Shown: positions 1,429-59,159 of the stretch, one piece after another
Position numbering within the stretch: position 1 is the stretch's first letter
How the letters are laid out: each line of letters opens with the position of its first letter
Assembly (NCBI GenBank): GCA_965649825.1
Contig: OZ287713.1
Location: 239,487-303,486 of the forward strand
Direction: 5' to 3'
Source: Penicillus capitatus
Taxonomy: Eukaryota; Plantae; Chlorophyta
DNA: 64,000 bases
Position numbers and translations under genes: made by a program
Notes under the pieces: generated by a model
The model's database searches: none
Seen by the model: only the letters and a program-made list of their open reading frames with translations
What the model was told of the DNA's origin: nothing

Positions 1429-1539
1429 CGATGATCACTTTAGCCTCTATCAAAACGTAAGGCGTTACACCAAAACTTAAACGTCCATATTCCTCAATCG
1501 CCTTCATCATCGCCATTCCAGACGCGACGTCTTGTCTCT

Positions 1540-25710: not shown

Positions 25711-28700
25711 ATGTCGCACGTGACAAAACAAAAGTGGCTGGAACTCGACGTTTTTCAGGAAGCACTAAAGGCGTCCGTTAGAGGACGTTTGACACAGGAA
25801 TATCTCGCTGCCGCTCGTAACTCTATAAAAACGTTCCTCGAGTATAACTCCGTGGAGGTCGGCTACAGTGAACTTACGGAGCGCGGATCCAAGGCCTTCA
25901 TTCGTTGCGTCATCTATGCTTACGCCGTCAGAGTGTTTCAACAAAAGGGGGAGTTGTGCGGGCCATTGGCACGCGCTCTCGAATGGTTCGTACGACAAAC
26001 GGATGCGGAGACGCAACGCGATTTTTGGGACGTTCTTCTGTTTTCGCGACAGTACGATGCATCAAAGCTTCGCGTCGCCGACGTGACAAACGGATTCTAC
26101 GACAAAGACAAAAAAGTCGAAACGCAGTGTAACAACCAGCCGGATTTAGATATCTTGTTGGATCTCCTGTCTGTCCCACAGTGTACGGGGCAGGAGATAG
26201 ATGCCATTGTGGGTCTTATCGAAATGGCATTGTACGAAATGCGCACGCATATGGTGCAAGCGGGATCGTCAAGTGACACTGGAGAGCATGACATGGTTCA
26301 GAAAGCCCTTGGAAAAGCTGTGTGTTCTACCAAGCTTCTCAGTCTTTTCTTTAACCCTTTAGTTGTGAATTCCGTTTCGCGTGGTTGTCTTTCCAGCCAA
26401 CAACATCTTAAATTCGTCGTACAGGAATCGACGCAGTTGACATGGAGCGATGGAAGAGGAGATTGTGACAGTCGCTGCACAATCGGTCCGAGAAAGAGGC
26501 CGGATGATTTGGTTGTTAATACACTAAGATCACTGTCACTTCGTAAAGATGTGATCCGTTTGATCTCGAGCCTCTCGGACGCCTATGTGTCGTCTTCTGC
26601 CTTTGCTAAATCTCAACTGCATAACAAAATCCTCGACGTCATTTTCTTTTCGGAGAATACCATGATGTTTGACGCCTTGTGCTGCAACCTCCAAGACGGA
26701 GGGATAAAAACTGACTCTTTTGTTTTGGACTGTCTTATCTATTTGTTTGAATCATCTTTTCTTTTCAGAGAACTTACTGCATTCACCGTTGGAGATTTCT
26801 ATACCTTTGTGTGTTTGAGTGTCAATAACGTTAGTCTTGCAACACCTGACAGGTTTTTTGAGACCTGTTTTAAATGCATCACACATGTCCAATCTGAAAA
26901 CAATAGAGAAAAGGAATGGTGTTTTGAGCGCCTTTCACTTCTGCGTTTTTTCTTTTCAGGCTTATGCATACCAGCTTCGAACTTTAACGTCGATGTGTTT
27001 CTTTCGCTAGGAAGTCTGTTTCTTCGCACCCATCTCGATCCGGATTTGGATCGCATGAGACAGGGGCAGAAGATCTATCCTTAACGTTCAGATCCTTTTG
27101 TCAGTACTGCCATAGAACTGCCGACTTTTGTGTTTTCCCCTGCCTACTGCATCTAGCACATGAGAACGGAGGGCATTTCTGTATGTCACTCCAGCAGTCC
27201 TGTTCTCTTGAGATAATCCTTGAATGGACAAAGCACCCCAAGGTCGACGATGCTCGCACGCTTATTGATCTCTTTCTGCGTCACAACGATGATGAAGGAA
27301 TCTGGCTTCGTCTGGCGTTGAGCTGGCTGATGAAATCTGCGAACGGACAACAAGCCTTACAAGATGCCGCAATCGATGAATCGACTTGGGCAGACGTGCG
27401 CAATCGCATCCTCAATCAGATGAGTGTCCCAAAAGGACAGAGCATCGACACAGTTCTCTGTTTGACGCGCTTGGTGTGTCTACTGCTGAATCTGCATCCA
27501 GAGATTGTTGTGCCGGCACTGAAATTGACTGCGCATGGCATCGTCAACTTCGAAATTCCTGACAATGAGTTCGATCTACTGATGGGAACCATGACAGCGG
27601 CCATATATCACTCGGATGTTGTCATACGGGAGTTGCTGTCAGATGCCTTCGATGAGGCTCTCGCCAAAGACACCCTGTCTGAGATCACTTTCTTCAACAA
27701 GCTGATCTCATTTGTGAAAAGACAGTCAGAGGACGACAGGAGGACTCTTTGCAGTATCATCAATCAGCTACTGCACAAGCTCTTTCATCTTCTCGAGAAA
27801 GATGACGACCATGTCCAGAAAGGGAATCTGACGAGACTGGTGAATCTTGGCATCGAAGACATAACAGAGAGTGGGACAGCGGCAGAGACGGAGACAGTTA
27901 TCTTCCAACATATGCATTTACCTCCGTTCTTCTCGGCAACCTTCCCGGAAGGAAAAACCATTCAAGTCGACAGTGCATCGTTGGATGGCATAAAGATGAT
28001 CGCCAGCCTGTTTAGTCGCAATCAACTGAACCTGGCGAGTTCATCCCTGAGAAAAGAGATTCTATCCACATCAGAGACAGGAGCGAGAATGGAAAGCGTT
28101 GACGGTCTCTCAGGCAGGAAGGGCACATCTCTGATCAAGACGGCTACAACTGAAGAGAATATCCAGATGATCGAAGAAGTGGTAATGCATAACCGTCCCG
28201 TTCTGCTCTACGGAGATTCGGGAGTGGGCAAAACGGCCACCTTAAAGGAATTGGCAGATCGCAAGGGTGTCGAATTGGTCCGTCTGAACATGTCTTCGAA
28301 TCTTAGCCCAGAGGACTTTTTGGCAAAGACATCGTTCGATTCCAGTGGTCAGATTGTGCTCGATGTGCAGCCCTTTGCTAGGAGCTTCGAAAAAGGCAAT
28401 TGGGTGCTGCTTGATGAAATGAATCTAGCAGAGGAGAGTACACTCAAAGTGGTCGTTGACGCACTAGAGAATGGCAAAATCGTCCTTTGCGACCGAAGCT
28501 CCGCACTAACGCCTCCACGGGTCCTGAAGAAACATCCGAACTTCAGACTGTTTGCCACTCAGAATCCGTGGCAAGCTGGCAAGAGAGAGCGAATGAGTTC
28601 AGCCTTCTTCTCTCACTTCTCTGTTATGCACTTTAAAGAGCTGCCGAAAGAAGAGTGGAATTGGATTGTGCAGTCAACACTGAGACGTCATTTTACAAGC

Positions 28701-31700
28701 ACCAGGACACATCTCATTCTGGCTGTGGCCAGAAAGATGACTGATTTTCACTGGAATGTCAGAGAGAGCATCAAAAACAAGTGCTACGAGACTGGTAGCC
28801 ACACAGTCATTACCAACCGCGAGCTATTGATGTGGACAGCAATGATATCGACTGCTGAACACCTGCCCAAGGTTGAAGCAGAGCTGGGCAACTACGCGTG
28901 GCTCATCTATGGCTGCCGATTCAAAGAAGAAGGTCGGCAGCTGGTCAGGGATATTCTGAGGGAGAGAGGCCTGTCTGTCGGCGAAGTGACTGCCTGGCCT
29001 CGCAGAGGTATCACAAGTTTTGAAAAGATGATGCAGGCATACTCTGCTCTGAGATCTGACGACAAGCAGAGGCTCCAATTAGATGCAGAAGCTCTTTGGA
29101 AGAGACACTTCTCTTCGGGACCAACACTGGATAACAACGGCAAGCAGACGATCGAGCGATGCATGTCTGTACATGGACATGTCTTGAAAGCGATTCTCGA
29201 TCCAAATTTCATCCAGTGTTACGGAGTGTACACTTCGTTTTCTGAGTACTGGCTTGTGAAATGGATAGCAGATGCGCTGCAAAAAGGATGCTTCAGAAAC
29301 GACTGTCCAAAGGAGCTGGGATTACTTGGAGCTGAGATCTACTGCTCTGCTCTCAGAAACAGACAAGCACAGATGATTGTTTTTAAGATCTTTAAGAAGG
29401 AATGGAATTTCGATCGAGACTCCGTGGAGCTTCAGAGCTTCCTCGTGCCAGAGATGCCTGTCGTAGTTAATGATCACACATGTGAACTGCTGACAGTCCT
29501 GGTCAATGCGTTGCGAAGTGAACAGCCCATTCTGATCAAAGGATGTGCTGGCTCAGGCAAAAGCTGCTTGGCCAAGACAATTGCCTTCTTACTGAGAAAT
29601 CAGTATGAACAGGTCACACTCACGTCAGAGAGTGAACCTTCCGTCATGCTTGGAGAACATCTACCAAAAGAAAACAGCCACGAAGAGGTCTCTATTGAAT
29701 GGAGGGATGGTCCATTGACAAGGTCGTTCAAAGAGGGCACCGTTTGTATTGTCGACAACATCGGTCAGGCAGAAGCAGTACTGCAAGAGAGAATCAATCC
29801 TGTCCTAGAATCTCCAAAGGTCCTTTGTCTGTCGGAGAAAGGAGAAACAAAGAGCCATCATTGTCGTATTCTGAGTGACGGAACAGTGTCCGAAGTGCCT
29901 GGCCCTGCAAAAGGATTCCAGTTCATTGCAACCTACACTCCAAAAGGCGTCGCTTCAAGGGGATATGACAGCACGTCCAATGAACTGACAGCTGCCTTTG
30001 CCAACCGATTCCTCACAGTGCATGTCGACGATCCTGGCCAGCTGTCAGATAGTCAGTTCAGATCTGTCCTGCACGGTATGCTGAAATGCTCTCTGTGCAA
30101 TGAGATCGATCGAGAGCATATCCAAGACATTTGCAGTTATTGCTTAAAAATTCGAAACTTCCAGGCCAAACAAAGCGGAGGACGGAGTAGCTTCAGACAT
30201 ATTGTCACGTTCGTGGACATCGTGACAAACTTGATGGCGCAATGCCCCAGAACGAATTTCAAAGACTGTCTGCATTCTGCTTTGATAGCAGTTTTTGCTC
30301 TCCGTCTAAAAGATTCGCGACAAAAGAAACAACTGCTCGATCATATGGGCTGTCCTTCTGATGCTATGAGTAAATTGCAGCTGCATGCCGATGTCGAGGT
30401 CGATCCAGAACTGGTGCTGACGCCCTCGAGAAAAGCCTATGCCGATGCTGTTCTGCTCGGCGTTTGCACGAACAAACCTATTCTACTCGAAGGAAAACCA
30501 GCTGTTGGAAAAACAGCTCTGATCAGTGGACTGAGGATGTTCCGTGGGCGTCGCAACCGAGTTATCGTTTTGAGCAACAGCGACACCACTGCACTGCAAG
30601 ACTATTTTGGAGCATGGATGCCTGGAAAGGCAGGGTTCCGTTACTCAAAAGGTGTCCTCATTCAAGCTATGGAGAATGGAGACTGGTTTGTGGCAGATGA
30701 GTTCAATCTCGCGCCTCTTTCCGTTGCAGCAGAGTTAATGCCTTTGCTGGAGGGATCACGCATCATTCAGATTCCAGGCACCGGCATGACGGTCAATGTG
30801 CATCCAGATTTCAGATTTTTTGCAACCCAGAATGCATTCCACGGAGGCGGAGACGGAAGAAAGCTTCTACCCATTACTGTGCGGAATCGTTTTCTGGAGG
30901 TGGATGTGGACAACTTTCAGCAAGACGAATTTGCCGACATCATCTACAAGCGATTCCAGAAGGAAGAGTATCGAGGCATTGTGACCAAGACAGACGCACA
31001 GAACCTGTCCACTCTCTACTTTGCATCTTCCGGGACCTTCCGTCTGACGATGAGAGACTTGATCAAGCTGGTTCGCAGATTCAAGCTCCTCCAAGCGGAG
31101 AATCGAAATGGAACGTCCTGGCCCGCTGTCGTCATGTCGTTGCTCAGTCCCCTGATCTCCACGGCAGACGAGCAAACGCAGCTCTTTTCACTTGTCAAGG
31201 AGGCATTCGGAAAAGCAGCAGAGAGCATTGCAAGATCCTGTATGAAGAAGTGTGTTGAAGAAACGAACCATGCACTTCTATTCTTCCAAGGACCCCTGTA
31301 TGTTTCGTTCGACGGATATAAACTCAGTCGGAGCCGTCTATGGAAACACAGCGATAGCAAGAAGGCGCCGCCCAAGATCTTTCAGGATAAACTTGTTGAG
31401 TTGGCATTCACGATAAAGGCAAAGGAGCCAGTTCTCCTTTATGGAGAATCTTCGTTCAAAACAGAACTTATCAGGACATGGTTGGAGATCTCCCAGATGG
31501 CAGACAAAACACAGATGGTACATTTGACTTCTGATTCCGAGGCTACAGAACTGATTGGCCAAGTGCACCTGGCATCGACAGTGGAAGTTCTCGAGATGCT
31601 GTTGTCCACCGGCAACCTCATTCTTAGTGAGACTGAAGAAAGACTTGCCTCGCGAGACCAAGCAGAAAAACGAAACAGTAACATTCGACTGATCAGTTGC

Positions 31701-34700
31701 CGAAATGGTCTGCCAACAAAAATTAAAGAACTCATCGAAACACTCAAAGGAAAGACGGCGATCTCGTGTGATCAGCGATCAACTGCAGCAGACAATGTAC
31801 ACTCTGGACCTTCTGAAGCTGAAGCGAGTATCCATCATCCCTCAAGTACAGAAGGTGGGCAGTCGGATGATTATTCAAGTAGTGATACGGAATGGGATGA
31901 TTCTGACGCCGAAGACCAAGGCTCCGTTCGGAGAGACGATGAATCAATAGACGCAGCCGGCACTTCTGATGCACGACACGCAGATGCAATAGCGGATCTG
32001 GAGATAAATGAGGAGAACCATGTCGAAGAGCCTGAATATTATCGACCATTTGCTCCGGTCCATGACACGATCAGACAGATCTTCTCTTTGCTGCAGAATG
32101 TGTTTGGCGAAGACATCCCCGTTGCCCTGAAACGAGCAGTTTGCCGGATGGAGCAGATATGTGCGTTTATGTCATCTGCCAATCGGATCCAGAGTCAAGG
32201 GTGCTTCGTCTTCCGTGATGGTCCATTTGTCAATGCCATCACCTTGAAGCATGTCTGCGTGATCGAGGATTATGATCGATGTCCACAGTCTGTCACTGAA
32301 CGATTGAACAGTGCACTAGAAGTAGACCCAACGTTCTCGATCCCTGAAGATGCGTCTCTCGATGGAATGGGAGCTGAGAAGTTAGATATTCCTAAGAAAG
32401 GCTATGCTTTTATAGTAACGGCAAACGTGGCGTCTTCTGCCACGAAACCGCGCCTCTCGGAGGCCACCAAGAGCAGGATCACCCGAATCCATATCCCGGC
32501 ATACTCGAATGAAGATATCATGTCGATTGTTGATGCAAATCTGTTCCGTGATCTGAAAGAGGAGTATCACAAGGATGCCCCTCTTCTGCTGGACGCCATT
32601 CGAACGATTCGATCCAAAGTCGCTAAAGAAACACACGAGAATCCATCTGCAGATTTCCGAAGAGTTCTTAGATGGGTCAGTTTCGTGACACATCATCCAA
32701 GAGATAGAATGCCTTTTGAGAGAATCATCTTACTGGGGGCCAAATACTTCTACCTCACTGGTCTACCGTTAGAGAAACAGAAGAAGATCCTTTTGACGCA
32801 CTTCAGTGATGATGTTCACAAATGGGAAGACAAGTCCATGACAGCGAAACCTGCAGATGGACATAGTACCTCCTCTTTTGCCATGAGCATCGAAGATCGA
32901 AGAGATAAAGGCGTTCGATTAGCTCGATTGCAGGGTGTGGGTCTCACACTGAGCATTCCATGTCGCACAGAGGAGTACAACGAGTGGAAACCATCTCTGC
33001 ATCCAACTCCGACTGTCATGGATAACATGGCTCGCATCTTTGCCTCTATCAGCACCAAGACACCTCTGCTGCTTGAAGGGCCGCCAGGGATTGGCAAAGT
33101 AAGAGAGTGAAGCTGAAAGGATCCAACACTTACCTGTCTATTCTTGCTCGCAGACAGCAGTGGTAATTGAAGTGGCCGGGCTTTTGGGGACAGGTGTGGA
33201 ACGCATCAACTGTTCGAGCGATACAACAACAGAGCAGCTGTTTGGGTCTGTCGTGCCGCAGTACAATGACAACCAACGTACGTTTGAGTGGATGGATGGC
33301 AAGCTCATCGAAGCAATCAAAGAAGGCAGATGGATACTATTGGATGAAATCAACCTGTTGCCACCTCAAGTATTGGAATCTCTTGTTCCCTTGCTCAATG
33401 GATCTACCGCTGATCACGGATTGGTGATTCCTGGCCAGTCGGGGGCAAACAAACCTATGATGGTGAAGGATATCTACATCTTTGCCACGATGAATCCTGC
33501 AGCCGAGGGAGGAGGCAGAACGAAACTCTCCAGATCCATCAGGAATCTCTTCACAGCTGTCGAGCTCGATCCTCAGAGTAATGATGAATTGTTTGAGATT
33601 CTGCGGAAGCTCTTCAGGGACCGCATCAGCCAAGATGTCGTCAGCGAAGACAGCATCCATCGGCTTTTTGACGTTTTTACAAAAGTGCAGTCGTTAGTCG
33701 AGATGGGAGAAATTAAAATCGCCAGTAGAAGACAGAGATTCAATCTGCGTGACCTCGTGGCCGTTAGAGATATTGTCGCCGGCAATGTCTACGATCAATT
33801 GTCGCACTACAAGATCGTTGCCACAAGTAGCTCGAGAGAGGAGCTTTCAAAGGAAGACAAAGCATCTGTGATTGATTCTGTTCTCCGCAATGCATTGCAG
33901 CTCGTTTTCAAGCACCGTTTTGAGAGCCAAGCTGCTCAAGAATGCATCCAAAATGCCATTGACGATGTCATCAAACCGCCAAAGCTCTTAATAAACGAAG
34001 AAAACAGCACGTCTATTGATACATCCGTGAACAATCTCGTTCGCATCGGAAGAGTTTACCTGAACAAGAATCCCAACCGTGCATCTAATGGATCTCTGGT
34101 GCATACGAAAGAGACAGTCGAGCAGCTTGAATTACTGGCGGCGGCAAGTCAGTCCACCAGGACTGTCTTGTTAGAGGGGCCCACATGCTCCAGGAAGACA
34201 TGTCTGGTGAAGGAACTGGCTGTCTTGACAGGCAGACCATTGTTGCTACTCTCACTACACAGAGAGTATGAGGTGTCCGATTTGATCGGACAATGGTTAC
34301 CTGCAAGGACGGATTCTATTCATGGTGAAGTACTCCAGGAATTACTGCACCTTCGCAACAGAATCGTAAAAACTGGACTTGAATTCTGTGAACATGCCTC
34401 AAAGGACAAGCAGACTGCTTTCTATCGAGTGATGAAAAAGGCACGCAGCAGCAACCTGTCCCAGGATAGAACGAAAGACCGGCAAATCTACAGATTTAAT
34501 CTGGAGATTTGTCGTGAACTTATTCAGAGACTGACTGCTGCGGTCGAGGTCCTGGAAGACACCGACCAGCAGTTTCACTCGTCCTTTCGCAACGAATTGC
34601 AGGCTCTCTCTGGCAAACTGTCGATGTTATTGGATGGGGAAGAGACTGTTGTTTTCCGATTTGTGACATCTGATCTCGTCAAGGCTCTCAAATCTGGAAC

Positions 34701-37700
34701 GTTTATTCTGTTCGACAACATCAACGCCGCGCCGCCAGAAGTGATCGAACGTGTGCTTTCACTCTTTGAAGAGGAGCCCTTCTTGAACCTCTATGAGCAC
34801 GCAGAAGGGGAGCAGTTGTCCAGAAAGGATGGCATTCATCCAGATACTCGTCTCTTTGCCACAGCGGATCTCGGAAGAATCAACACACACAAGCTGTCCA
34901 ATCCACTTCTGAACAGAATGATCAAAATCTGGCTACCCGAGATTGATTCATGGATCTCTGATGCAACATTTGAATCGCTGGAGGAACATGAAGTCGTCGA
35001 GATTCTCTCAGAGAAGTTTGCTTCGCATGCTGGAGGCAACATGGCTGCACGTCTACTCTCCTTTGTCCATGCAAGAGTCAAAGGATTTACTAAAAACTGC
35101 GAGATTACCATCTCAAAGGACTCTGGCATCAGTTTCCGTACTCTGCTTGAAGCATCCTCTCTCGTCACTTCTCTTCTGAAGAATGATCAACCTGTGTTCA
35201 ATGCCGTTGTCTGGGGAGCATGGCGAATCTATGCATCCGTCCTGGAAGATGAAGCAGATTGGAGGAAACTAAAGGAAGTCATTCAAAGTGCTTGCGAGGC
35301 GACAGCCGAAGTGCCCCCCTCCAAATTCTATGCAATTCGACAGAAGAGAGATGCAGTCGAGCCGTTCTTGGCAGAGAGTGAGAATATTCGTCTGGTCTTT
35401 GCATCCGTCGTCCACATTTCGCTTAAGATTCTGTTTGGATGCATAATGAAGATCTTGGATATGGATGTATTTGAAAGACTTGTTCTCCTGTTCCTGAATC
35501 AGATAGCAGTGAAGCTGTATCCACGAGAGGAGACGATGATCAGGCACCTCATACAAGAAGTTCCCAAAGGGGCAAGGAACGAGGCCGTGCTCAAGCACCA
35601 GTGTGAAGTATTTGGATGTGATTGTGTCAAGGAGTTCTTCAAAGCCGTCACCCACAGTGAGATGCAGAAGGTGGATTATGTCTGCAAGCATCCGCGGAAG
35701 CTGTTGTCTCTGTGCGAGCAGCTTGTTGCCAACTCCGCATACAGTGACTGGCAAAACAGACGCTTTATGATTCAAGACATATCCGTTGTACTCCAGGAAA
35801 TCACTAATCTGCTGGAAGCTGTTCCGTTACGACCTTCTCAGTCTTCAGACATCCAGAAGGTGATGGAGGTCGTGCGACAATGGCGCGCTGTGGAAGATCT
35901 CTTCATCTACTTTGACCCCCTTGAAGATGCCTCTTTTGCATCTTGTTACCAGAGGTTGCTTCAAGCGCGGAATGAATGTTCTGACACAGCAGTGAGCTAC
36001 ACCTTGGAGAAGCTGCTGTCAGAAAAAGTGTCCTCATCAGACATGAAGCTAAGACATGTCATCGTAAATCTTTTAAAGAACGACGGACATCCTGTCGAAG
36101 AGAGAAGATGGGTGGCACTGCAGCTCGCCATGACTTCCCTCAGATGGAGAACAATGTTGATGTTGGATGAACATCTTTTGACGATTCACCCCGATACAGA
36201 AACTACTGGACAGATATTGGCCCTGCAGAAACTCCTGTGCCAATCGAACATGATTGCAAACCTGCAGGAGGTCGTCCATCAGTATTTGGAAACCTTCAAG
36301 GCAGCCAAGAAAGAACGGGGAATAATTCAACAAACAAAGCAGTTTTTTGAAAAGCTCATGTGGCCCTTTCACGGTCAAGGTTATCATCGCCTTGTGGAAG
36401 AATCCGAAGAGAACATCGCTGCTGACGACGATAATGCTATTCCAGATGAGATGCGTCTCATCAAGCAGCTTGATGAGCTCATGCGTACAGATGATGCAGT
36501 GTTTTTGTTTTCCGACGAATGGGTGGCCATTGTCGAGTTTCATGCAAAACTCTTGAACGAATTGTCGCTGCGTAGAGAGAGGGAAGGAAATCCTCTGAGT
36601 CTCGACACGGCTTTCTTTGCTTGGTTGGGTTCAAGAATGGATGACGCCCGATCGCAGCATCGCTGTGCCAATGAGCTTTCACTGATATGGCTCGGTGTCT
36701 GCTTCTCAGAGTGGCGGAACCCGATTCCTTGTCAGATCATCCTGTGTACTGAAGAGAACATCACATTCGATCCGTTCAGGGGCAAAGAGAGTTCTATCTC
36801 TGCTGTCATTCTTTGCGCAGAGCTGAGTAGTAGACAAGGAACCCCAGCACTGGTATCGCTTGTTGTTTTTGAGAAGGCAGCTTCGAATGATGGCGAGAGA
36901 ACAGCTCTGACAGTACAACACCATCGCCGGGGACAGGGCGAGATTTCGCAGAACACCTGGCTGGAGAGATGGATGAAGTATCATACCGAGTATGTGATTG
37001 TGTTTCTCGGCATAAACCAGCTGCCCGAAACAAAGATGATCGCAGAACCCTTGTCGCGTTTGGGCAATTGTCTAATGGATTGTCTTGCCAAACTACAGTC
37101 ATATGACTATAATTTTTCCAGTCCTGACGTGGCAACAGCTGAAACTGTCGATGCTTGGAAGGTCTTGATAGAAGAGACAAACAAGACAAGCAAGGAAGAA
37201 GATATCTTCCAGGCATCGTTGCTCTATCATGGTATCCTGAAGCTTGATTTTGTTCTCTGTCGACTGCAGCACGGGGGCAGCGAGCAGGAGTCAGATATGT
37301 TCTCCATATATAATGATTTCCTTAGCAACCAGTCCATGTCGCAGATTAAAGCCGAAATCAACGAGAGCGTCGTGGCCATCAAGAATCTGGCAACACGAGG
37401 TGGTCGAGAATCGGCCTCCATTGCTTACAGCTTTCTCAAACAGTTTGAGGGATTAAAGAGGTTCCCCAGCGAGGATCTTGCACAGAGAGCGTCTGAAGTG
37501 GAGCGTGCCATTCAAGCAATCTACAAAGATTTGTTCTTTGTGCTAAACCTTATCCGTCCGATTCTGGGTCTTCGAGAATTCTTGATTGAGTATTCTCTGG
37601 GACATCTAGACCCAACAGATCCAGATCTGTGGACCAAGTGCAACGCTGTGACTACTTTTGTCTCCGGATCTATTGTATACTTCAATGCTTTTCTGATCGT

Positions 37701-40700
37701 CGATGGGGAAAAGACAGTGCTCGACAGAGAGAGAACAGAAGAAGAGTTTGAAGACTGGCAAGACAGTTTCAAAGCTCTCATTGATCAGCTGAACATCTCT
37801 ATGACAATCTTAGAAGCCAATAGCTTTGATAAGATCTTCCTGCAACTCAGGGATCGATACTTCGACTTCTTGCAGACAGAAGCCATGGATAAAATACATC
37901 CAGATAGTTTCAAAGGTGGAAAGGATGCCAGTGCCTCGTCCTGTGGACCCATGTCGGAGAACGGATCGGATAACGAGAGACTGATCAATGTTGTCTCTGA
38001 TCTGATAGCTGGGTATGAAGATCTCTGGATCAGAGCCCGAGAATCTACGAACAAAGCAGTGATGGACGACGCTGCTGCGTCACTTAACACACTGAGAGCG
38101 CGCGACAACTCATCCGAAATTAGCAAAGCTGTTTTGGCCAAGTATCAGAGTCAGCTCAGTAACCTCAATGCCGAACTGAATCAATCTGCGTCAGAAAAAG
38201 AAGATGCTCGGCATTTCCCTGTTGTATCCAAAGAGTGCGACGTCTTTGTGCGAAATCTTGCTATCTGTCTGCAAAACTGTGATTTTTCATTCGTTCCTTT
38301 GAGGATATCTCCTGCAGACGACCCAGTTAGAAATCCACACAAGGACTTCATTTGCCGAGTCGCTGATTGCACTGATCGAGCAAAGAAGTCAATTCAGATT
38401 CTGACACGGATGGCTAAGAATACTGCCTTTCATGCGCGTTTGCAGAAGAGCATTGATGTTTTGCGAGGATACGATTTCGAAGATAGCTGTGCCAACAAGA
38501 GAGAGGTGCTGGAAGAGCTTTCAGACTTGGGTATCTTTCATGGCCCTTTGTCCATTCGATTGAAATTCCGTGCGTCCGACTCTGACAGCTGCAACGAGCT
38601 GGTCCAAGCTGCTGTGGTCGAATTACTGAACGTTAAAGCAGATTTCATTCTTAAACAACAAAAAAAGATGTTTCAACCAATCTACATAGAAGAAGTGGAA
38701 AACGCAGTGAATGACATTACACATCTGAGTACAGTAGACGACTCCTGTCCAATGTTTATGGCTGATCCTGTCTTCGATACCTTGCGGAGACTCAGCAAGA
38801 ATCTCTCATCCTGTCTGGACGAATCTGCTGTGATGGCCAACGTGGCATCCTCCTTTGTTTGTCCTGGACTGTCGGTAGAAGACATCGTTGTTCTCTTCTG
38901 TGCAAACTTCAACAGAATACAACATACATTGATGGATTATCGAGCTGACAGGAACCTGGACATTGCTTCTGACGATCCTATACGGCACATGCGTCGACGA
39001 GGCCGCCTAGTGTCCTATGCTTACCAGAGGGATGCTGAAGTCACCTTTATCTTTGCCGACATTGTAGAAATCATCGAAAAAGCTGTCGTATCCATTCTCA
39101 CTTTCAATTGGGAATCAGAACTCGCATCACAGTCGGATGTGTGCAAAAAGGCGACGAAGGAAATAGTGATCGGCCTACAGTTCATTGCGCTGTCCGTTCT
39201 GCTGACCAAACAGGATTTCAGTTTCTTGTCATCGTTCTTGCTGTTGTCGGATTCAGTAGAAGAACAGAAAAATGTAGACAGACTGAAGAATGAACATCAG
39301 AATGTCACTGCCAAGCTAGAAGCCAAAACCAACGAGCTGAAAGAAGTGCGGGAAGGAGGAGGACTTTTTGATCCTGTCTCAAATCCAGGCACAGTGGCCA
39401 GGAACCCTCAACCTTGCTACAATGCACATCATCTATCCATTGAAAGAGAAATCGATGTGTTAGAGACATTAAAGATCAAAGTCGAAAAACAGATGATGGA
39501 GGCGGAGAGCCAACTCCAGCCTCGGCGGATTGAGATCTGTAGGCAGCTGTCCTCAGACCTTCGGATACTGTTGCTGACAGGGTTGCGTTGTCTCAGCCGT
39601 ATTTTTCGATATGATACCAAACATTTTGAAAGTTACTTGGAGACGAACAGTGAAAGCGCTGCTCATTATGCTTTATTCATTAAAAATGCCACCAAGGCTA
39701 GCACCACGATTTTCAGAGATATGGCTGGAATCAACCCAGACTTGGTTGTCAACCTCGAGCAGTGTTGTCAAACGCTGGATAAATTTAAGAAAGAACGTCT
39801 TTCTTGCCTGAACACTGGAGATCCTTTCTGCAATGCTCTGCAGTCTCTCTGCACCGTTGCCTCCCTTGGAGCCAGACGTATCATGCAGCTCATTTCTCCC
39901 AACATCGTCCAAGAATCCACAGACATGCAAGCCATTGCATCTTTGGAAAAGAGATCTGCTGATGGTTTTGATGCTCTCAGTAACGCATGTATCGGCCACC
40001 CTATTGATGAAGACACAATCAAGAAAGCATCTGAAGATGTTTTGAAGATTCAAGAAGATCTTCGACGTCTTAGAGGCGACAATGCACAGAACAAAGCACT
40101 GAGTTCCGCCCTGGAATATGCAGAAAACACAGTGCAACGAGTTGTTGGATACTACAATGCACATGTGGACGCACAGAATCCAGTGATCTGGTATAGAAAT
40201 GCCATAAAGGACGGAAGACTTCCTCCCTTGTGCTCGGTCGAGAACAGCAGTTTCCAGCAGGATTTAGATCGCTTACCTTCTCTTTGGAAAAGCTGCTTCG
40301 ATGCAATCAGATCTGCTATAGACACCAGCGCTTTGACTAATCCTTTCCAGCTGCTCTCTTTGATGGAGAATCACATCTCCGCGAATGCTGATCTGTACCA
40401 ATGTGTATCCTGTTATGGCAATCTCTTCCTTAAGAGTATGACAAAAATGCACAAGGTAGTGCACAATCCGGCGGTGCACATCTTTTTTCCGTACGACACT
40501 TTCGTTCTGCCGCGTCTAAAACCTTGCTGAACGACGGTGCCCGCACGCACGAAAGCGAACGATGCAGCCCTCAGGTTCTCAGTCCGGAGGTCCTGACACC
40601 GCCCCCGACCCGGTGCGCACGGCGGTGGCGCAGGCCGCGAACACGGTCCGGTACCGGCGCGACCTGCGCCAGTCCCCTGAGGTACTAGAAGCCATGAGCA

Positions 40701-43700
40701 AGAAGGAGCTCATACTCGTCAACACCGCCCTCCAAGCCTGCCCAACGCACATCGCCGCGACCGTGGACCCAGCCACGCTAATCTCCAAGATCAACGCTTA
40801 CCTGGCGGCCCATGAGGAGAAGGACAAAGCCCAGCTGCGCCTAGTACGCCGACTCGAGAACCTCCAAAACCAGCTTCTCCTGGCACCTGAAGCCCCAGAC
40901 CTGCCCGAAAGGGACACAACCCACACGGCGTCTCTCTGTCGATCAAGACACTCGGTGCCACCGAATGAATTCCTCAGAGCACTCTCAGACGACATACGCT
41001 CGGCTACCTCGCAGATCGAGATTATTGCCTCGCCACTCGTACCCAAGGAGAATATGTACGCCCCCAGATTCTCCCAGGCTCTCTCCATGCTGCACGAGGT
41101 ACACACCTGCATGCTGTTCTACCACTGCATCACGGACTGGACATCGCCCACCGCTCACCCCACGCCCACCGCCCCTGCGGACGGAGTCCCAGCAGCATCA
41201 GTACCCGGAAGCGCGGCCCCTCGATCGTACCGAGATGCCGCCCGCAAGGCCTCGCCCACACAGACCCCTGCACAGCAGCAAAGGAACGCCCAGGCCAGAG
41301 AGCTAAGGAAGAAAACCCAGGAACTCAAAGCGCAGATCCGATGCGATGAGCGCAGCTTCCAGCTGTGCCCAGTGAAATTGAAGGGAGATCGCCCGTCGTT
41401 CCGTCAGCTCGGAATCAGTCTGGAGCGAAAGCTCAAGATCAGGAACCTCAAGGAGTACGTGGAAGACATCCGCACAGATCACGGAGGCCGTTACTACGTC
41501 CAAATCCGCGCGGACCTACGGGAGTCCTTCGAGAAATCGCTTGATCGATGCCTTGAATGCGCCGGTGACTCATGGGATCTGGAACTGGACGACCTGGGTA
41601 CTTTCACTGTCAACAACCCGTATCTCTCGCCCACCAAAGACAAGGTCCCAGTGGTTATCAGCAACGTAGACCTGGACATCGACCCGGAAGACGCCATCAC
41701 TGCCATTGCGGAACAGAATGCATCCCGTTGGAAAATTACGGCCGCAGAACTCGAAGAAGAGCACCTCGCAGCTCCACACCGATTGAATCGCCGAAAACGT
41801 GACTCGGCTGGTCAGCCCCTCCCGGAATGGACACCCAGCAGGAACCTGAAGGTCTTCGTGTCGAAGACTCTCTACGAGCAACTGAAGGACCCCAAGACCG
41901 CGTTCGCCACGTTGGACTACATGGTATTACCCATCCGATCGTTTGCACGGCTCCCCAGCGCCCCCCGAGGAGTTTCCTGACCCACATTTCATTAATCCTT
42001 TCCTGCTTGGCCAACGCTGATCTGCTTCTCTGTTGATCGTCGGCATTACACAGAACAGATGCGCCTTTGATGTTTAACTTTAAAAAGGGCTGTAAGAAAG
42101 ACCAACTTTATTAATCCGGCGGTGCACCACGGATACATGACAGATGAAGAATCTCAACACTTCGAGGCAGTCCTTACTGTCTGTGCCGATCTTTTGAATA
42201 TGGATCTGGTGCATGCAAACCTGTCCGGGGTCAAAGAGATTTTCACAAATTTGGAGAAAAAACTAGGAAACCTGTCAAGCGTGATGACTCGGACGCGCAG
42301 AGATCCGAAGCCATTCTTGGTACAGTACATGGGAGGTTTGTGCAAGCAGTGGTATTTTGAATGTGTTCTTTGCATTACAAGAACTCTACAGAATAAACTG
42401 GATACCGAACAATCCTCTAAGCCTCTAGTTGAACGACTTGTTGCTGCAAGACACGGACAGGGCGATCTCGAATCTGTGTTGAACTTGGCCGATTTTCTGG
42501 ATATACAAGCTCTTCAGGCCACGCTCGCTGAAAAAAGCATGACTACTGTCTTGAAGAAGTTCCCAGATCACGAGATTGAAGTCCTGAAAACCATGGCGTC
42601 TCTTGCATCCCAGTTGTCAGCAAGCGCGGGGCAAAAAATGCTAAAAAGATGGAAAGAGTATCATGCCTTACCTTCCTCGATCGGCATCGAAGCGTTCGAA
42701 ACACTTGCGAGAGTTTCGAAAGATTTGATGAGGACAGATGTTGCGCATCTGCTTTTAAGAGATGCGACCTTGGGTGGCGGCTCTGTCGAACACATGCTTG
42801 AAATAGCAAGTGGCTACTTGGCACATCTTTGCCAAACAGTCTCAAAAGGAATAAAAGAATCCAGCACTGGTCTCATCAAAAAAATCGGAACATGCAGCAA
42901 AAAGGCACAATCGATGCTGCTGGAGCGTAAAAACCACAATGAGGTGTACTTAAACGAAGTTTCGGAACTCCTTTCGACTATAAAGCGAGAAAAAGAAGAT
43001 GCAAAGAAACAGTGGGGGAATGCGTGTAACCAGTACAAGCAGAAAAAGCAAGTACTTGGTCAGCAGTTGGATCAGAAAGCAAAAGAAACGGCAAAGTTGT
43101 ATGCTGAGTTCTGGGGTGAGGTTAATGCAAGCTATCAGAGAGAAATGCAACCGAAATGGTATGCAAATCAGGACTTTGGCTCTGTCTTCCTGGACCTGAG
43201 CAAACGGTTGCAGGAAATTCTGAAAAAACAGAAATTTGTCTGCCAGTACACCGCCGACCAGAAACCCATTGAGCTGGAAGACGTGGGATTGGAACGTGTT
43301 CCATTGATTGTCGAGTTACAATCTTGGGATGTCGATGTTCGTTTCTTTCAGTCAAGAGGGGATACACTCGAATTGAGATGCGAAGGAGGGCTGGGTGGTC
43401 CTTTTTGCTACCACAATCTCCCCCGTCATCATTCGCTCGACAGCCAGAAGTTCGTCGTTTTAGATCCGTCAATCTTTACATTAGTCATCACTGCTTATCA
43501 AGACGGTTCACAAAGTATTTTGGAAAGATTTCCTCTACATCGACTGCATGATTCGTGTGCAATAACGAAACGAACCCGGCGATCGAGAGGATGCCAAATT
43601 GCATTTAGCGCTGTAACACACGAAATGTACGTAAGAAACTCATCCCCACTTCAGATCAAAAGGACACGGAATCCTGTGCGGACAAGTGAAGCCTTCGCTG

Positions 43701-46700
43701 AAGAACTAAACAATCACTTCAAGAATTACAACAATCTTTTCACACAGTTCCGAAATTGCCTGGAGAGCGAAGCAGAATCTCTGCGGTATTCAGAAGAAGC
43801 AAGTCAAACAGTTAAATTCAGTGGAAATGACCGGGTTCTTATGGACAATTCATGGCATATGAGAGCCATGATGTGGGGGAAGCAATTCGCAGAAAACCTT
43901 TCACAAGTATTAGACGATACTTCGAAATGTCTTGAAGTGACGAAGGCGCAAACACAATGCTTGGATGCCATCCGTAAAGGAAGCGAGAAACTGTCTGTTA
44001 TCCTCCATTCTCCTCCAAATGTGTATTCTGATTTCTCTATGAGACTGGTCGAAGAGCTGTCGTTAGCCAGAGTGTCCTCGAAAGAGTTGCCTTTGGTATG
44101 GACTGCCAAAATGCGACACACGCTGGAACAGCTAGAGCTTGACGTCAACGTTCTCCAAACTAATGGAAACGAAGCCAGGCTTAACTTGTTCGAGCTCTAT
44201 GTCACAGTGATCTGTCAGCATGCTATCAGCGTCACCAAAGAAGAAGATCTCAAGATAGTTGAAAACCGCTACCAGGAATGGAAGACTTTTCTCGAGAGAA
44301 ACTTGTCTTTGTTTGACCAAGAGATGCTGCTGAATCGCGAATCGCTTTTGGAAGTGGCATTGTCCATGGGAAAGGCTCGAATAGAATGCATAACACTTGC
44401 GAAGCAGCTCGACAAGAGAATGGAACTCAGCCAAAAACTGGGGACAACCGCGATAGACATTCTCCGTGGAACACAGCTTCGTCACAGTTCTAAGATTACG
44501 ATCTGCGGGGAAGACGGAACGCTGTCGCTGAGCAGTTTAGATTGCGCGGTGGATTTTGGCGTTGTCCTTCATGAGAATGACGTCCTCGCGTCAGATCCAG
44601 GCTCTCATGTCTACGCTGTCGAAGTGGAGAATCGAACCAGTGAATCTATCTGTGTCGATCTCTCTGTACTTGATCCGTCTTCCCAGTTATTCCGCGAGAT
44701 CGGATCAACGACTGCTATGCTTTATGGAAAGACCAGCTGGTACTTCATATTCCACATGGATTCGAACGCCGTGGGCAAGATTACAGAGATGTGGAAGATA
44801 GCATCCGGCGACAAAAGACTGAATGCCAAATTTAAGATGACCATCGAAGTTCAAAGGCTGGCCGTGCAACTGAGTACAGACGCCATTGATTTTGGCACAG
44901 TCACTCCTAAGTCCCAGAATATTAAAAAGACTTTGAGCATCGAAAATGTGACCGACTTTCCTCTCTTGGTCAAGAGTCAAGTGCAGATCAGCCAGACACG
45001 GACTCGGTTCACGATTTCTCCGCAGTCTTTCCACCTGGATGCACGCAGTTCTCGATCGCTGACAGTGACGATCAATTCTGGTAACATGGATGAGAAGATT
45101 GACACTGAAATGATCCTTGGCATCGTCGGCAACATGAAACACATTCCGATCAAAGCTCAAGTCACACAGCCACAGTATGAATTGGTGACAGACACAGGTC
45201 GCGTGATTCAGGAAACGATATTTCGTTTGCCAGTGGTCCCACCAGGAAAGAAAACACAAGCAGCCATTCGTATTCGGAATATAGGAACAGTTCCTGTAGT
45301 CTACCGTCTCACTTGTCTCGCTCCGAGCTCGTCAGCGCTCAAGGTGGTTGGGGGTACTGGCGCTGTTCGTGCTTATGAGACATCCTCTGACATCTTGATT
45401 TCAATGAGAAACCGAGAGTACCTTCTACTGCAGCAGGAACTCAGAGTCCAAGTTGATGGATGCATCGAAAGGGAATTAAGAGTTGAAGGAAAATGGGTGG
45501 AATCAAAGCCACAGTTTCTGAAGAGGAATGTCGACTTCCAAATGCAACCGCTGCATCTGGATGCCATTGCGAAGGGATGTAGATCAGTCGCACTGGAGGC
45601 AGCAAACACAGTTGAAAACAAGGCCGACATCGGTATCAAAATCTATCCCCCCAGCAGTGAACATTTCGCCTTTGATCGGCCATATTATGTCCTCGATCCC
45701 CGCAGCAAAGCAGAAATCAAAATGAGTTGGCAAGTGAGAACTCTTCGAGTGAAGGAATCCACAGTTGTCTTTTGCACTGAGAATCAGAAAAAAACTGAAG
45801 TTCGCAGTGCAGTTGAAGCTGCCTGAGGTTAACGAACTTCAGTTCTTTCCTCGCAATCTTTTCTTTAACCCCCTTGATGTCGGCGACGTGGAGATGAGAG
45901 AACTAAAGATTGTGACGAAGAAGCTTCTTTTTATTAACACGAATCCCGCCAAGGTGGCCCAGATTCAGTCTCTGGCGCTAAAATCAAAAACAGCTGTGAA
46001 GAAAAGAAGCTCCCATAAAAAGGGACCATGGAAATTTGGCTCGGCTGACATACCAACAGAATTTCAACCGAAACACAACAGTGTGGTTACTCAGATCGAA
46101 TTGAAGACTAGCGAGGTTTCAGGCTGGATCGTTGAGACATTGCAGATTCAGTCTGAAGATGATTATCTGGTGGAAGATGACCTGTCATTCTGTCTTCCTC
46201 TGAGATACAACGTTGTTCTCCTGACATACGCGGGACTGGCTTCTTCTGCTGCACAACAGATGATGCAACTGTGTTCAGATTCAAACAGAACGAGTAGGTC
46301 TTCCGGGAGAAACCTCAAGAATTGTCTGCCAAATCTCCATCTTCTCCGGACATTCCAGCAACACGCATCCACTATTCAAGTGCTCTTTCTTCTGATGCTC
46401 TGCGAGATGCAAGTGCTGAAATCTGAATGGACATTGTCCGAAGAGAAGGCAACACATGTTCTCCATAGCAACCCTGAAGAAATCCCGAGAATGTGTGCCC
46501 AGTATGCTGGAGAATCGAGTCAAGAATTGGATGAACTCCCGGGCACCTCTCAAAACATCGAAGAATACTTTGAAAGTGTTCGTGAAATCTTTGATAGTGG
46601 CAACGAGTCGCGTTTGGGAGATTTCTGTCTGCCTTGCGCCATACTCGATGGTCTTACACCTGATCTGCAAAGGATGATGGTCGCCCTATACATGCTACGA

Positions 46701-49700
46701 GCTGACTGTCAAGACGAGCAGCAGTTGCGTGCCTCAGTGATGCCATGCCAGACATGTCAACAGCAGCTCTGTTCCACAAGTTTGGCAGAGAGATGTGGGA
46801 AGGCTGCCAAAAAATAGGACAGACCTTGGAGGAATGCTTCCAACGAGTGAAGCAAATACTTATGCATGACATAAATGAGCGCAATGATTTCTTTGAAGTA
46901 CTGGAGAGTATGATGCAGTGTGCCGATGGGCTTCAAGATCGCAGATCATTCAGCCAAAGAATTGCGGAGAGCTTAACCGAAAGACACCCTATCGCCTTAT
47001 CACAAGTCATTTCGAATTTGATGACACTGAAGACATGGAGTACAGAGGAGATCGACGTGTCTGCCCTCAAACACTTCCTGCTGAATGTGGAGATGAAAAG
47101 AGTGATAGACGGATTGTGCGCCAAAACGCCACGAAGAGTCTTCGATGCATTCTGCACATTGGCCCGAAGTAGAAGCAGTGGATCTGGGAATGTAGTAGTC
47201 CATCATCTCCTAAACGTTCTGTCCACCAAGAAGCAGAACTCTGACAAACCTTTTGTTGTGGTGGACACTCCCACGCATTCAAAGCGTATTACTCGGGTGA
47301 TCCTGGAAAGAGAGAATCTTGAAGACCTTGTGGATCCACTATCAATGCTCCACTCGACTGGTCATATTACGATACAGCAGATTAGACGGCATATCCAACG
47401 TATCGTAATCATGTTGTTCTTTGGACAGCTGGGTGACATTAGCATCCCCACCGAGAGGCTGATATCGCTTAAGGAAAGTGTATTGAAGATCGTGGACAGT
47501 CCATATGACATGAATAGAGTAATCTCCATCGAATTGAGTGACGTACGCAATCCTTCTCGTCAGAAGACCTTCAAGGGTATCTTGTCGAGGATCATGACCC
47601 TCGATGTCATTGTCGAAGGAAGTCATGCACTTATACGTCCACTCAACAGACTGGTTGCAGAATGGTTCGATCTTGAAAACGGCGATGAAGACGAGCAAAA
47701 ACAGAGAGAGCTTCTTCGCAAGAAGGCAAGATCTCTTGAACGGGCTGTTAAAGCGCTCAAGCCTGAGACTCTTTCGAGATCTACCAATCCTTTCGAATTG
47801 GCTGCAAGAGTTCTTCAATTTGTTGCGTCTCTAAAAGGTGTGGGGATTGCGAAACCGGAAGTGTTGAATGGATTGACACATGTGGCAGCAAACTTCTCAT
47901 GGGAAGGCGTTCTTTCTCTCTGCAGAACTCTTGCCCGGGAAATTCCTGGCGTGGACGTGCTGTTTACGGTCCTGGATCTTGTGGAAAAAGATCGAGATGA
48001 CGAAAAGTTGAACGGGGAAATTATCGAAGCAGTCTTACCTGAGGAGACCAATGAATTACTCGTCCACGCACTGAACCAACTCATGAGTGACGCCGTTGAA
48101 GTTGATCAAGTTACCCGCGAAGAGATCTGCAAGATCTACAATGAAGAAGCTTTCGATACAGTCGTTTTATTGCTGAAGATTGCGAAGACAAAAGAATCTA
48201 TCTGCCAAGTGGAAAAAGCAAAGAGAATGACACTCTCTGGACTTCTCGAGATAAAGGCATTCATTGATCAAATTGCATCTTTTGCAAAATGGAGCCAGTA
48301 TAAAAAGAAGAGCGACATCCTGAAAGAAATCTTTTTCAGCTTCTGCACATGTTCCATTTCTGATCGGTTGTCTGAAGAAGCTCTTGTCCTTAGTAAGATG
48401 GCGCTTCTTTTATCATTGCATCGATACACCACTCAGAAATTCTGGAAACAGAAAGAAGCCCTCTATGATACTCGAACTGTGGAACTCAAGTTCGAGGTAG
48501 CGAACGTTCAAGAACCGTCGCATCCAGTTGAGTTCGGCAGTGAGGACGACGATAAAGAAGATGACAATGAGACAGAAAAAGTGGACGACGTTCAACATGG
48601 CGATGCCGCATCACTGGAAAGCAGCAGTACCCCACCAAATGATGGAAATAACAAGAAGTGGTTCTTGCCAGTCAACGTTCCAAGCAGCCAACTGGTTCTT
48701 TTGCCGACAAGTATCTCGCGAGAGTCTGACAGAAGTGGATCGTATAAGACAACGTCAGCCAATCCAACAGTGCCTTCCTCCAGTCTGGTTGTGAGTTCTT
48801 TACAGAGTCTGCAAAGAGTAGAGTCCTCCGTCAAAGATATCGTAAAACAACTCGGGCTTAAAGACTTCTTAAAGAGCGTTGGTAAAGACGGGAGTTTGGC
48901 GATTGTCGGTTTTAGAGAAATCACACATACGCTTGTTCAGCTGAAAGAAACGACTGAGCAGTGGTGTTGCCTTTTTGAGAAGGCCGTCCGCCATTATCAC
49001 ATTCTGAAAAAGAAAGAAAAGACTATTGAAAGCAGAGTTGTTTGTGCAGGAATCAATATTGTTTTTCTTTTCCAGTTCTTGCGAAAATACCTGGATGACT
49101 TTAGCCTTTTCCAGATGCCGGAACCTATGCAACCTGTCTGCCGTACTGTTGTGCATTGTTTAAATGCAATTCCCAGGAAGACACTCTCAGTTGAACTCAG
49201 AAACCTCTTGGAAGAGGCTGGAGCAACAGATGTATTCCATGGATACACTATTGACTTCAGCATGCCTCCAACAAACAACTATCTTTCAAGCTCGCACCCT
49301 GGAAGATCCTCCACCGCCGATATCGCAAGAAAAATGCAAAGACATCAAGCTCCCCGTCTCGAAGTCGTCATGCAAGACGATTCTGTACAACTCCGGGAGA
49401 AATCGAGTTTTTACGATTTCTTGAAGTCTACAGATGCAAAAGGAAGATCTCAGTCAAAAGAACGATGCCCAGTAGTGTTGGAGAAAACAGTGGATATCAA
49501 GATCGACCCAAATGCTCGAATCTTGACACCAGGAGAGAGAAAACGACCTACGGAAGATGCAGTGGATGACGTTAAGGAAACAGGAGCCTTCGAGCTACCA
49601 GAAAATCTGGCGTGGAATGCCATCGGCGTACTAGGACAAACCACTTCTTCCGGGCAAAGAATCCATAAGCTTGAAGACCTCCGTGGAAACCTCGACCTCT

Positions 49701-59109: not shown

Positions 59110-59159
59110 ATCGTGTTGTGGTTTCTGGCAGACTCTTTCGGCTGTAAAGTAGAATCGAG

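Follow-up and report, generated by a model that had tools for sequence, protein, structure and literature searches.

We analyzed a stretch of 64,000 nucleotides from the green alga Penicillus capitatus (contig OZ287713.1 of assembly GCA_965649825.1, forward-strand positions 239,487 to 303,486; hereafter the window), in which a very large gene for a multidomain ATPase is interrupted by a compact retroelement. The element encodes a single protein, a relative of the first open reading frame (ORF) product, ORF1, of long interspersed nuclear elements (LINEs), and it is flanked by a perfect target-site duplication (TSD). The features of the interrupted locus and of a second, decayed copy further downstream, in window coordinates, are as follows.

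27183..52303, plus strand: interrupted host gene for a multi-AAA_5 (dynein/midasin-like) ATPase with ASH/HYDIN-type Ig and VWA domains (Pfam, ORF list, frame restoration).
40465..40479, plus strand: left copy of the TSD, AATCCGGCGGTGCAC (exact repeat; frame restoration).
40480..42112, plus strand: ORF1-only retroelement without long terminal repeats (non-LTR), 1,633 bp (matches the full-length copies of the same structure in L001, L002, L003, L005, L006, L009 and L010).
40480..40561, plus strand: 5' untranslated region (UTR), 82 nt, with the conserved (T)nCCGTACGACAC at 40486-40499 and TAAAACCTTG (the 5' ends align in all copies).
40562..41980, plus strand: ORF1, 472 aa and stop codon, uninterrupted, with an N-terminal helical region, a linker, a long helix and two domains resembling RNA recognition motifs (RRMs).
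41324..41941, plus strand: predicted tandem RRM-like region of ORF1, about residues 255-460 (AlphaFold model, Foldseek, lowest dN/dS).
41981..42112, plus strand: 3' UTR, 132 nt.
42063..42090, plus strand: 3' hairpin, 6-bp stem GCCTTT/AAGGGC with a 16-nt loop starting GATGTT (covariation, single-sequence folding).
42091..42097, plus strand: TGTAAGA, an instance of the TGTAARA motif, directly 3' of the hairpin (invariant across copies).
42107..42112, plus strand: 3' tail TTTATT, a short form of the (ATT)n of its subfamily (comparison of copies).
42113..42127, plus strand: right copy of the TSD (exact repeat; frame restoration).
55487..55975, minus strand: old decayed second copy from the same superfamily (its frameshifted ORF1 remnant covers the final ~130 residues and is most similar to the P0018/L006 subfamily).

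The 15-bp sequence AATCCGGCGGTGCAC has exactly two occurrences in the window, to which a tolerance of two mismatches adds none, whereas 0.08 matches are expected from the shuffle control, in which two or more matches were obtained in 1 of 100 shuffles. Because deletion of the element together with one copy of the repeat joins the ORFs 33160-40530 and 42122-45826 into a single host frame that is continuous over 3,672 codons, the repeat can be accepted as a true TSD; in an empty site of the host target, ...GTGCACAATCCGGCGGTGCAC would be followed directly by CACGGATAC... The GC content of the element is 0.58, compared to 0.46 in both flanks. The 82-nt 5' UTR probably acts as an internal promoter or initiator. 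A search of the window copy for inverted repeats that pair its termini yielded none, and the element contains no match to a tRNA or an Rfam family; the possibility that its 5' end is a ribozyme or another known RNA was rejected given the lack of an Rfam match even at E<=1. The 472-aa ORF has no significant Pfam match, and neither Pfam searches with the ORF nor tblastn and a LINE ORF2 profile run against the element detected an RT (reverse transcriptase) or an endonuclease; in this respect the element differs from an autonomous LINE, which has both enzymes of its own. An earlier examination of the letters of the window alone (hereafter the sequence-only reading) had described 1,633 bp between identical repeats, an uninterrupted 472-aa ORF, a trailer of about 130 nt and the lack of an RT and an endonuclease, and the present analysis agrees with it on all these points.

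The nature of the protein emerged from database searches. A distant relative, P0023, matches the window ORF with an E-value of 3e-22 over 96% of the query. Its gene is located on the 6.7-kb contig L004, where it immediately precedes a 1,174-aa ORF that contains Exo_endo_phos_2, the apurinic/apyrimidinic-type endonuclease (APE) domain, and RVT_1, the RT domain. Because the matching protein is located upstream of an ORF2 that combines the two enzymes, the window ORF is, as judged by sequence similarity, a homologue of the ORF1 of a full-length APE-type LINE, in line with the identity assigned by the sequence-only reading. P0023 and another relative, P0024, extend beyond the end of the window ORF into two CCHC zinc knuckles. 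A profile search of 1.84 billion representative sequences recovered only 101 relatives, and nearly all of those that reach the C-terminus likewise continue into two knuckles (P0023, P0024 and about 25 others), with the knuckles starting 1-6 residues past the position of the window ORF stop. Thus, the suggestion that the ORF stops just before the expected zinc knuckle is upheld by homology. The C..C...H....C motif is absent from the window family, and a few relatives likewise lack knuckles. An additional observation concerns P0030 (EukProt g4446.t1), a 686-aa protein that matches both the ORF1 profile (residues 3-188) and the ORF2 of the L004 type (39% identity); this protein probably stems from a transcript, fused or partial, of a full-length LINE that belongs to this clade and resides in a cultured protist.

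A full-length structure model was set aside as too weak (predicted local distance difference test, pLDDT, of 61), and we used instead an AlphaFold model of the C-terminal 218 residues, which has a mean pLDDT of 85.4 and consists of two beta-alpha-beta modules. Foldseek comparison of this model yielded 58 PDB matches at E<=0.001, and all 50 of those listed are two-RRM proteins; the best match among those listed is HuR (1.1e-5), and others include U2AF65, hnRNP A1 UP1, CUGBP1 and NONO. Human L1 ORF1p is a weak fold match (rank 35, E = 0.045). A difference in how the two RRMs are oriented to each other keeps the TM-scores low, and the evidence for tandem RRMs therefore holds at the fold level only, the level at which the C-terminal half of ORF1 models as a tandem of RRMs. 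One or more RRMs with CCHC knuckles immediately downstream define the Type I ORF1, a type that occurs in the I, Jockey, R1, Tad1, plant L1 and L2 clades (PMC4120745); we applied the Khazina and Weichenrieder classification as summarised in that source. The window ORF has at least one RRM and lacks CCHC knuckles downstream of it. Given that the homologous RRM region directly precedes the CCHC knuckles in the relatives, the parent is a Type I LINE; because the knuckles are absent, the window ORF is a truncated Type I derivative rather than a full member of this class, and the truncation in this family falls precisely between the RRMs and the knuckles. Assignment of the parent LINE to a clade was abandoned because the best named relatives of its ORF2, which carry the annotations jockey-like or fungal RT, share no more than about 25% identity.

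The element belongs to a family. A search of 5.8 billion proteins identified 22 clusters of relatives of the window ORF, with 46-90% identity, all from ENA metagenome assemblies, and many of these relatives are ~472 aa long; two distant JGI proteins were matched as well, and the window ORF itself is absent from the records searched. The clusters contain at least 36 distinct ORFs on different contigs, of which 14 are intact at ~472 aa. The DNA was mapped for eight relatives, including those on L001, L002, L003, L005, L009 and L010 (ERZ25074695) and on L006 (ERZ26696514). All eight are full-length, ORF1-only copies of 1,624-1,639 bp, except that the L006 copy, a representative of a divergent subfamily from the second assembly, is 1,786 bp long. 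The mapped copies share the same 5' end, (T)nCCGTACGACAC, and have the same 3' architecture, and the gene tables of all eight list no RT gene adjoining the copy. Each mapped copy has a TSD of its own, 14-16 bp in length (AATGTATGAATGAA, ATTCGTCTTGATAA, AATAGCGTTACTGTTC, GAATCGCGAAGACTT, ATATCCACAGACGT, ATGTCGATGGAAAAA, ATCTTATAACGGTT), and a weak preference for C|A(A/T)T is visible by eye where the TSDs start. Since nine copies, with the 15-bp TSD of the window copy included, carry nine different TSDs of 14-16 bp, the family is mobile; it is an undescribed, multi-copy family that is always ORF1-only. The proposal of a non-autonomous family that keeps both ends and its own ORF1 has thus been substantiated, and the copies of the same structure with different TSDs that the sequence-only reading had called for were found. 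The element is not single-copy, it has recognizable ORF1 similarity and its termini form no inverted repeats. The family thus shows the hallmarks of insertion by target-primed reverse transcription: variable TSDs, a variable tail without LTRs or, in the window copy, terminal inverted repeats, and LINE homology.

In the decayed second copy in the window, the ORF1 remnant is followed by about 120 nt that include the 3' motif GAAAAGGAGATGTGTAAAGCAAT as well as an A-run. Because the 3' motif directly follows the ORF1 remnant, there is no room for an ORF2 in this copy either. Neither a TSD nor a 5' part was recognised, and the copy is 5'-truncated or eroded. The contigs of the mapped relatives yielded two further observations. 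A Ty3/gypsy-type LTR retrotransposon (protease, RVT_1, RNase H and integrase) occupies positions 1-3289 (minus strand) of L010, ~600 bp upstream of the ORF1-only copy, and removal of the L006 copy (9839-11652) leaves a 352-aa open frame across the site, between two gene calls resembling leucine-rich repeat (LRR) proteins, so that this copy may also be inserted in a coding region.

The last ~50 nt are the best-conserved non-coding part of the family and have a common layout: a 6-bp stem, a loop of 13-16 nt starting with GATsTT, the invariant TGTAARA, ~10 nt and the tail. The stem pairs in 97.9% of the cells of the alignment, compared to 48-67% in slid controls; three of the six pairs change on both sides, with the closing pair being G-C, U-A or A-U, and none of 500 shuffles reached the observed score. 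Single-sequence folding recovered the same stem in all four copies. These observations provide moderate support for a covarying 3' hairpin, which presumably is the element recognised by the reverse transcriptase. The tails distinguish two subfamilies: in the window copy and those on L001, L009 and L010, the tail is (ATT)n and varies in length (TTATTATTATT in the L009 and L010 copies, TTTATT in the L001 copy), and in those on L002, L003, L005 and L006 it is A5-A9. The remark in the sequence-only reading that there is no clear poly(A) is accordingly correct for the window copy, which ends in TTTATT, and not for the family, which possesses real tails, either (ATT)n or a short A-run; poly(A) is missing from the window copy because its subfamily carries (ATT)n tails, of which TTTATT is a short form. 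The full-length LINE on L004 has a similar 3' end, with a hairpin, UGUAAAA, about 10 nt and an AT-repeat, and its 5' UTR shares GT.CG.ACAC and the exact TAAAACCTTG with the family. Because both ends of L004 resemble those of the family, the sequences fit the possibility that the ORF1-only elements kept both UTRs of the parent clade.

Comparison of six copies shows that the ORF1 protein is under purifying selection. Pairwise dN/dS values are 0.16-0.27 in the main family and reach 0.40 against L006, where the comparisons are saturated; the RRM half has the lowest values (0.08-0.17). The synonymous divergence (dS) among the copies ranges from 0.18 to greater than 1, and the low dN/dS therefore implies that most of the divergence arose in lineages in which the protein mattered. 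The extent of this divergence requires long-standing activity of several ORF1-only master lineages, and in no fewer than two assemblies.

The insertion of the window copy is recent. The host gene spans about 25699-52626 (plus strand), corresponding to ~8,000 codons, and encodes at least six AAA_5 modules and a midasin-type lid detected with Pfam. The element is located inside the coding sequence in the sense orientation; the host frame enters it for 17 codons and terminates at a stop codon at 40528-40530, with the 17 codons forming a read-through peptide, such that the window copy probably truncates the AAA_5/VWA protein and is a knock-out insertion. A 700-aa host peptide spanning the insertion site had no detectable homologue among the 5.8 billion proteins. 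The frame is open on both sides of the insertion, across 3,672 codons. Assuming neutral drift of the interrupted allele since the insertion, and given that a stop codon would result from 4.3% of the point substitutions possible in this frame, the chance of observing no stops in 3,672 codons drops to 0.05 at d = 0.0063, with indels not counted. The age of the insertion is thus bounded at about 0.6% divergence, a bound that is void if the element is spliced out: in that case, the gene would still be under selection. The perfect TSD agrees with a recent insertion, although at 15 bp it is a weak indicator of age. Together, the perfect TSD and the host frame that is open on both sides bear out the recent mobility postulated by the sequence-only reading, and the fresh insertion in the AAA/VWA gene suggests that the family was active very recently.

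Two observations pertain to the structure of the host gene. Only one GT...AG pair connects ORFs 27183-33110 and 33160-40530 in frame; it delimits a 55-nt intron (33099-33153, GTAAGA...CGCAG), which suggests that the host has short canonical introns. The host also has domains of the centriole/cilium type, and a ribosomal protein encoded on L002 is about equally similar to the ribosomes of all eukaryotes. Downstream of the element, three long plus-strand ORFs (42122-45826, 45765-46817 and 46745-52303) overlap in different frames in the region 45765-46817; no simple GT/AG intron of 30-400 nt that joins ORFs 42122-45826 and 46745-52303 in frame was found, and the arrangement could reflect complex splicing, frameshifts or separate genes.

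The interpretation that best accounts for these results, to which we assign a probability of roughly 0.8, is that the window copy is a non-autonomous retroelement that derives from an APE-type LINE with a Type I ORF1, is mobilised in trans and was recently inserted, in the sense orientation, in an exon of the host gene. The family would have originated by an internal deletion extending from the first CCHC knuckle of ORF1 through ORF2, so that the element would retain the 5' UTR, the portion of ORF1 with the helices and the tandem RRMs, and ~130 nt at the 3' end that comprise the hairpin, TGTAARA and the tail. Transcription would start at the 5' end of the element itself, from an internal promoter, and the RRM protein would coat its own RNA in cis. 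The endonuclease and RT of a resident autonomous LINE would then recognise the 3' hairpin and the tail, nick the target with the weak preference for C|A(A/T)T and copy in the RNA by target-primed reverse transcription, the TSDs resulting from nicks staggered by 14-16 bp. Under this scheme, it is the ORF2p of a LINE that would supply the mobilisation in trans.

Several results weigh against this interpretation, among them the failure to find the autonomous partner. No intact ORF2 was detected with tblastn or a LINE ORF2 hidden Markov model (HMM) in ~165 kb of host-related DNA including the window, where the only trace of a LINE ORF2 is a marginal, decayed RT fragment on L002 (10045-9665, minus strand). 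The ORF2 candidates from ENA, L007, L008 and L011, were dismissed: they come from other assemblies, have a GC content of about 0.40 and show no similarity in ORF1 or the termini. Scans of JGI metagenomes with the ORF1 alignment and the conserved 3' 22-mer returned nothing, nor did scans of GTDB genomes and IMG/VR with the 5' 20-mer. Short terminal motifs are common to the family and one distant full-length relative only, L004, which comes from another sample, and the UTR similarity to L004 is short and partly judged by eye. The 3' stem is not unusually stable in single-sequence folding, and the evidence for the hairpin is moderate because the covariation comes from only about three independent lineages. 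The autonomous partner sharing both ends that the sequence-only reading had anticipated has therefore not turned up in the host-related DNA, among the ENA candidates or in the collection scans. As for the fragment on L002 itself, it corresponds to the RT 'thumb' (9665-10045, minus strand; E = 2e-4 in tblastn and 0.003 with the HMM) and lies ~100 bp downstream of the ORF1-only copy; the search for ORF2 also encountered the pol of the LTR element on L010. More tentatively, one might view the family as an old, self-sustaining parasite of LINEs that outlived, or never co-resided with, an autonomous element of its own clade, that maintains a tandem-RRM protein devoid of knuckles under strong selection and that exploits the ORF2p of an unrelated LINE with nothing but its covarying 3' hairpin and its tail, a scenario that we consider possible and rather doubtful. 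Its persistence through speciation would follow from the occurrence of divergent subfamilies in at least two assemblies. If true, it would amount to a natural experiment in which ORF1p is required in cis while ORF2p is freely borrowed.

Four other explanations were weighed against a trans-mobilised LINE derivative. The copies could be retrocopies of a domesticated host gene derived from a LINE ORF1, comparable to L1TD1 in mammals or EKA in powdery mildew, with the signature of selection reflecting a host function. Indeed, dN/dS below 1 is also expected of copies from one selected master gene, and host gene families derived from ORF1 are known (PMC4161310; PMC4641428). However, all copies, including those of the divergent subfamilies and of the second assembly, keep the exact termini, the covarying hairpin and the repeat tails; the existence of several deep lineages (dS >1) with intact 472-aa copies and TSDs fits several master lineages better; and the protein has no signal peptide or other obvious feature of a host function, so that we regard domestication as improbable. 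A somewhat smaller chance is given to the possibility that splicing or template jumping on full-length LINE transcripts regenerates the ORF1-only copies each time, as in the case of the spliced integrated retrotransposed elements (SpIREs) of L1. A deletion boundary that is the same in all copies and coincides exactly with a domain border is what such a process would produce, but knuckles and a neighboring ORF2 are lacking in all 36 related ORFs of the ENA assemblies, the search of 5.8 billion proteins should have brought up any full-length parent with a close ORF1, and the subfamilies diverged as ORF1-only units, the 3' UTRs included.

The possibility that the element mimics an intron deserves separate consideration because it bears on the age of the insertion. 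The 5' GTACG and the 3' CTGAT...AAAAAG, both conserved across subfamilies, could serve as a donor and as a branch point with an acceptor, respectively, making the element an introner-like retroelement that is tolerated in exons; use of the donor at 40491 and the acceptor at 42087 would remove 1,597 nt and leave 51 nt, that is, 17 stop-free codons, in frame. Such an outcome is not surprising, however, since an in-frame, stop-free result is expected by chance for ~15% of GT/AG pairs (a rough estimate, 1/3 x ~0.44), and 24 in-frame pairs were listed. Furthermore, a long host ORF surrounds only the window copy and perhaps that on L006, one or two of eight copies; the residual lengths, 0, 2, 0, 2, 0, 2, 2 and 2 modulo 3, reveal no in-frame constraint; the sole definable host intron is the 55-nt one with GTAAGA...CGCAG; and the covarying hairpin better explains the 3' motif, while the 5' motif is common to the 5' UTR of the full-length LINE. 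Splice mimicry as a general property of the family was rejected given the few copies in ORFs, the lack of frame bias and the short host intron, and we consider this explanation as a whole very unlikely. Least probable of all, to the point of being negligible, is that the element is a DNA transposon akin to a miniature inverted-repeat transposable element, or else a dead LINE copy left by a single internal deletion. Perfect direct repeats on the two sides and the lack of an RT would be expected in these cases too, but the window copy has no terminal inverted repeats, the TSDs are 14-16 bp long and accompanied by 3' repeat tails of varying length, and the LINE ORF1 homology along with the many copies of the same structure refute both versions.

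For the preferred interpretation, a LINE derivative that encodes ORF1 alone, comparison with known systems is instructive. The L1 ORF1 belongs to Type II and consists of a coiled coil, a single RRM and a C-terminal domain (Pfam Transposase_22). The window family resembles HAL1 in its ORF1-only architecture with LINE ends and in being non-autonomous. HAL1, or 'half-L1', of mammals encodes only ORF1p, requires ORF2p in trans and has had several independent origins (PMC5753468, citing Smit 1999 and Bao & Jurka 2010). Unlike the window family, HAL1 is derived from L1 and has a Type II ORF1; because Transposase_22 is not detected in the window ORF and CCHC knuckles occur in its relatives, the family is not L1-derived, and the RRMs of the window ORF are modelled as a tandem. 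The hosts differ as well, mammals in one case and a non-mammalian, probably unicellular eukaryote in the other, where the family has (ATT)n or short A-run tails and a 3' hairpin.

The second system to be compared is HeT-A of Drosophila, the Gag of which keeps its zinc knuckles whereas the window family has lost them; to our knowledge, additions of HeT-A to chromosome ends leave no flanking TSDs. HeT-A, with its partners TART and TAHRE, is a Jockey/I-type non-LTR element that has only Gag/ORF1 and no pol, is considered non-autonomous and transposes to chromosome ends, where it forms arrays (PMC5537684). In contrast to these telomeric arrays, copies of the window family are dispersed and interstitial, with TSDs of 14-16 bp and one copy in a coding exon; because the copies are dispersed and flanked by TSDs, the family is not telomeric. 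The family thus works like HAL1 and HeT-A and belongs to neither.

Among the LINEs with a Type I ORF1, the closest parallel is the element on L004, which combines the homologous RRM region of P0023 with two knuckles and an ORF2 with APE and RT domains; the window element differs in having neither the knuckles nor ORF2. Some LINEs require a specific 3' end, a mode of recognition known as 'stringent'. Short interspersed nuclear elements (SINEs) that share the 3' end of a LINE depend on the LINE enzyme, as the window family would, with the hairpin and the short repeat tail as the likely recognition signal; however, SINEs have an RNA polymerase III head and no coding capacity, whereas the window element, without a tRNA or Rfam match, has a conserved 472-aa ORF under selection. 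The EKA genes of Blumeria graminis are a large family that originated from a part of a LINE ORF1, with truncated, degenerate LINE copies co-opted as effectors (PMC4641428). The members of the window family, in contrast, represent complete mobile units that are flanked by TSDs and have conserved termini, and there is no sign of co-option.

ORF1-only derivatives of LINEs are rare, HAL1 in mammals and HeT-A in flies being the well-known cases; what is new here is a different ORF1 type in a very different host. The evidence is clean in that every mapped copy is full length and has a TSD, the protein is under purifying selection in an element that lacks the enzymes, and the deletion coincides with the border between the RRMs and the knuckles. 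These findings support the view that retaining an RNA-binding ORF1p that acts in cis pays off even when the reverse transcriptase is borrowed, and imply that the CCHC knuckles are dispensable for this role of ORF1p in cis.

Some other features of the window can be mentioned in passing. A 1,080-aa protein encoded at 10035-13280 (minus strand) contains an APAF-1-type helical domain followed by WD40 propellers and resembles STAND/apoptosome-like NTPases. The region 57400-59200 is GC-rich (0.55-0.60) and contains long overlapping ORFs on both strands, one frame of which reads like leucine-rich repeats (LNLSGN...LDISNNPV). Downstream of this region are a gene for a protein with PH and MBOAT domains, resembling DGAT1/ACAT acyltransferases (59487-61088, minus strand), and two genes for proteins with CBS domains, at 61350-62090 (minus strand) and 62899-63534 (plus strand).

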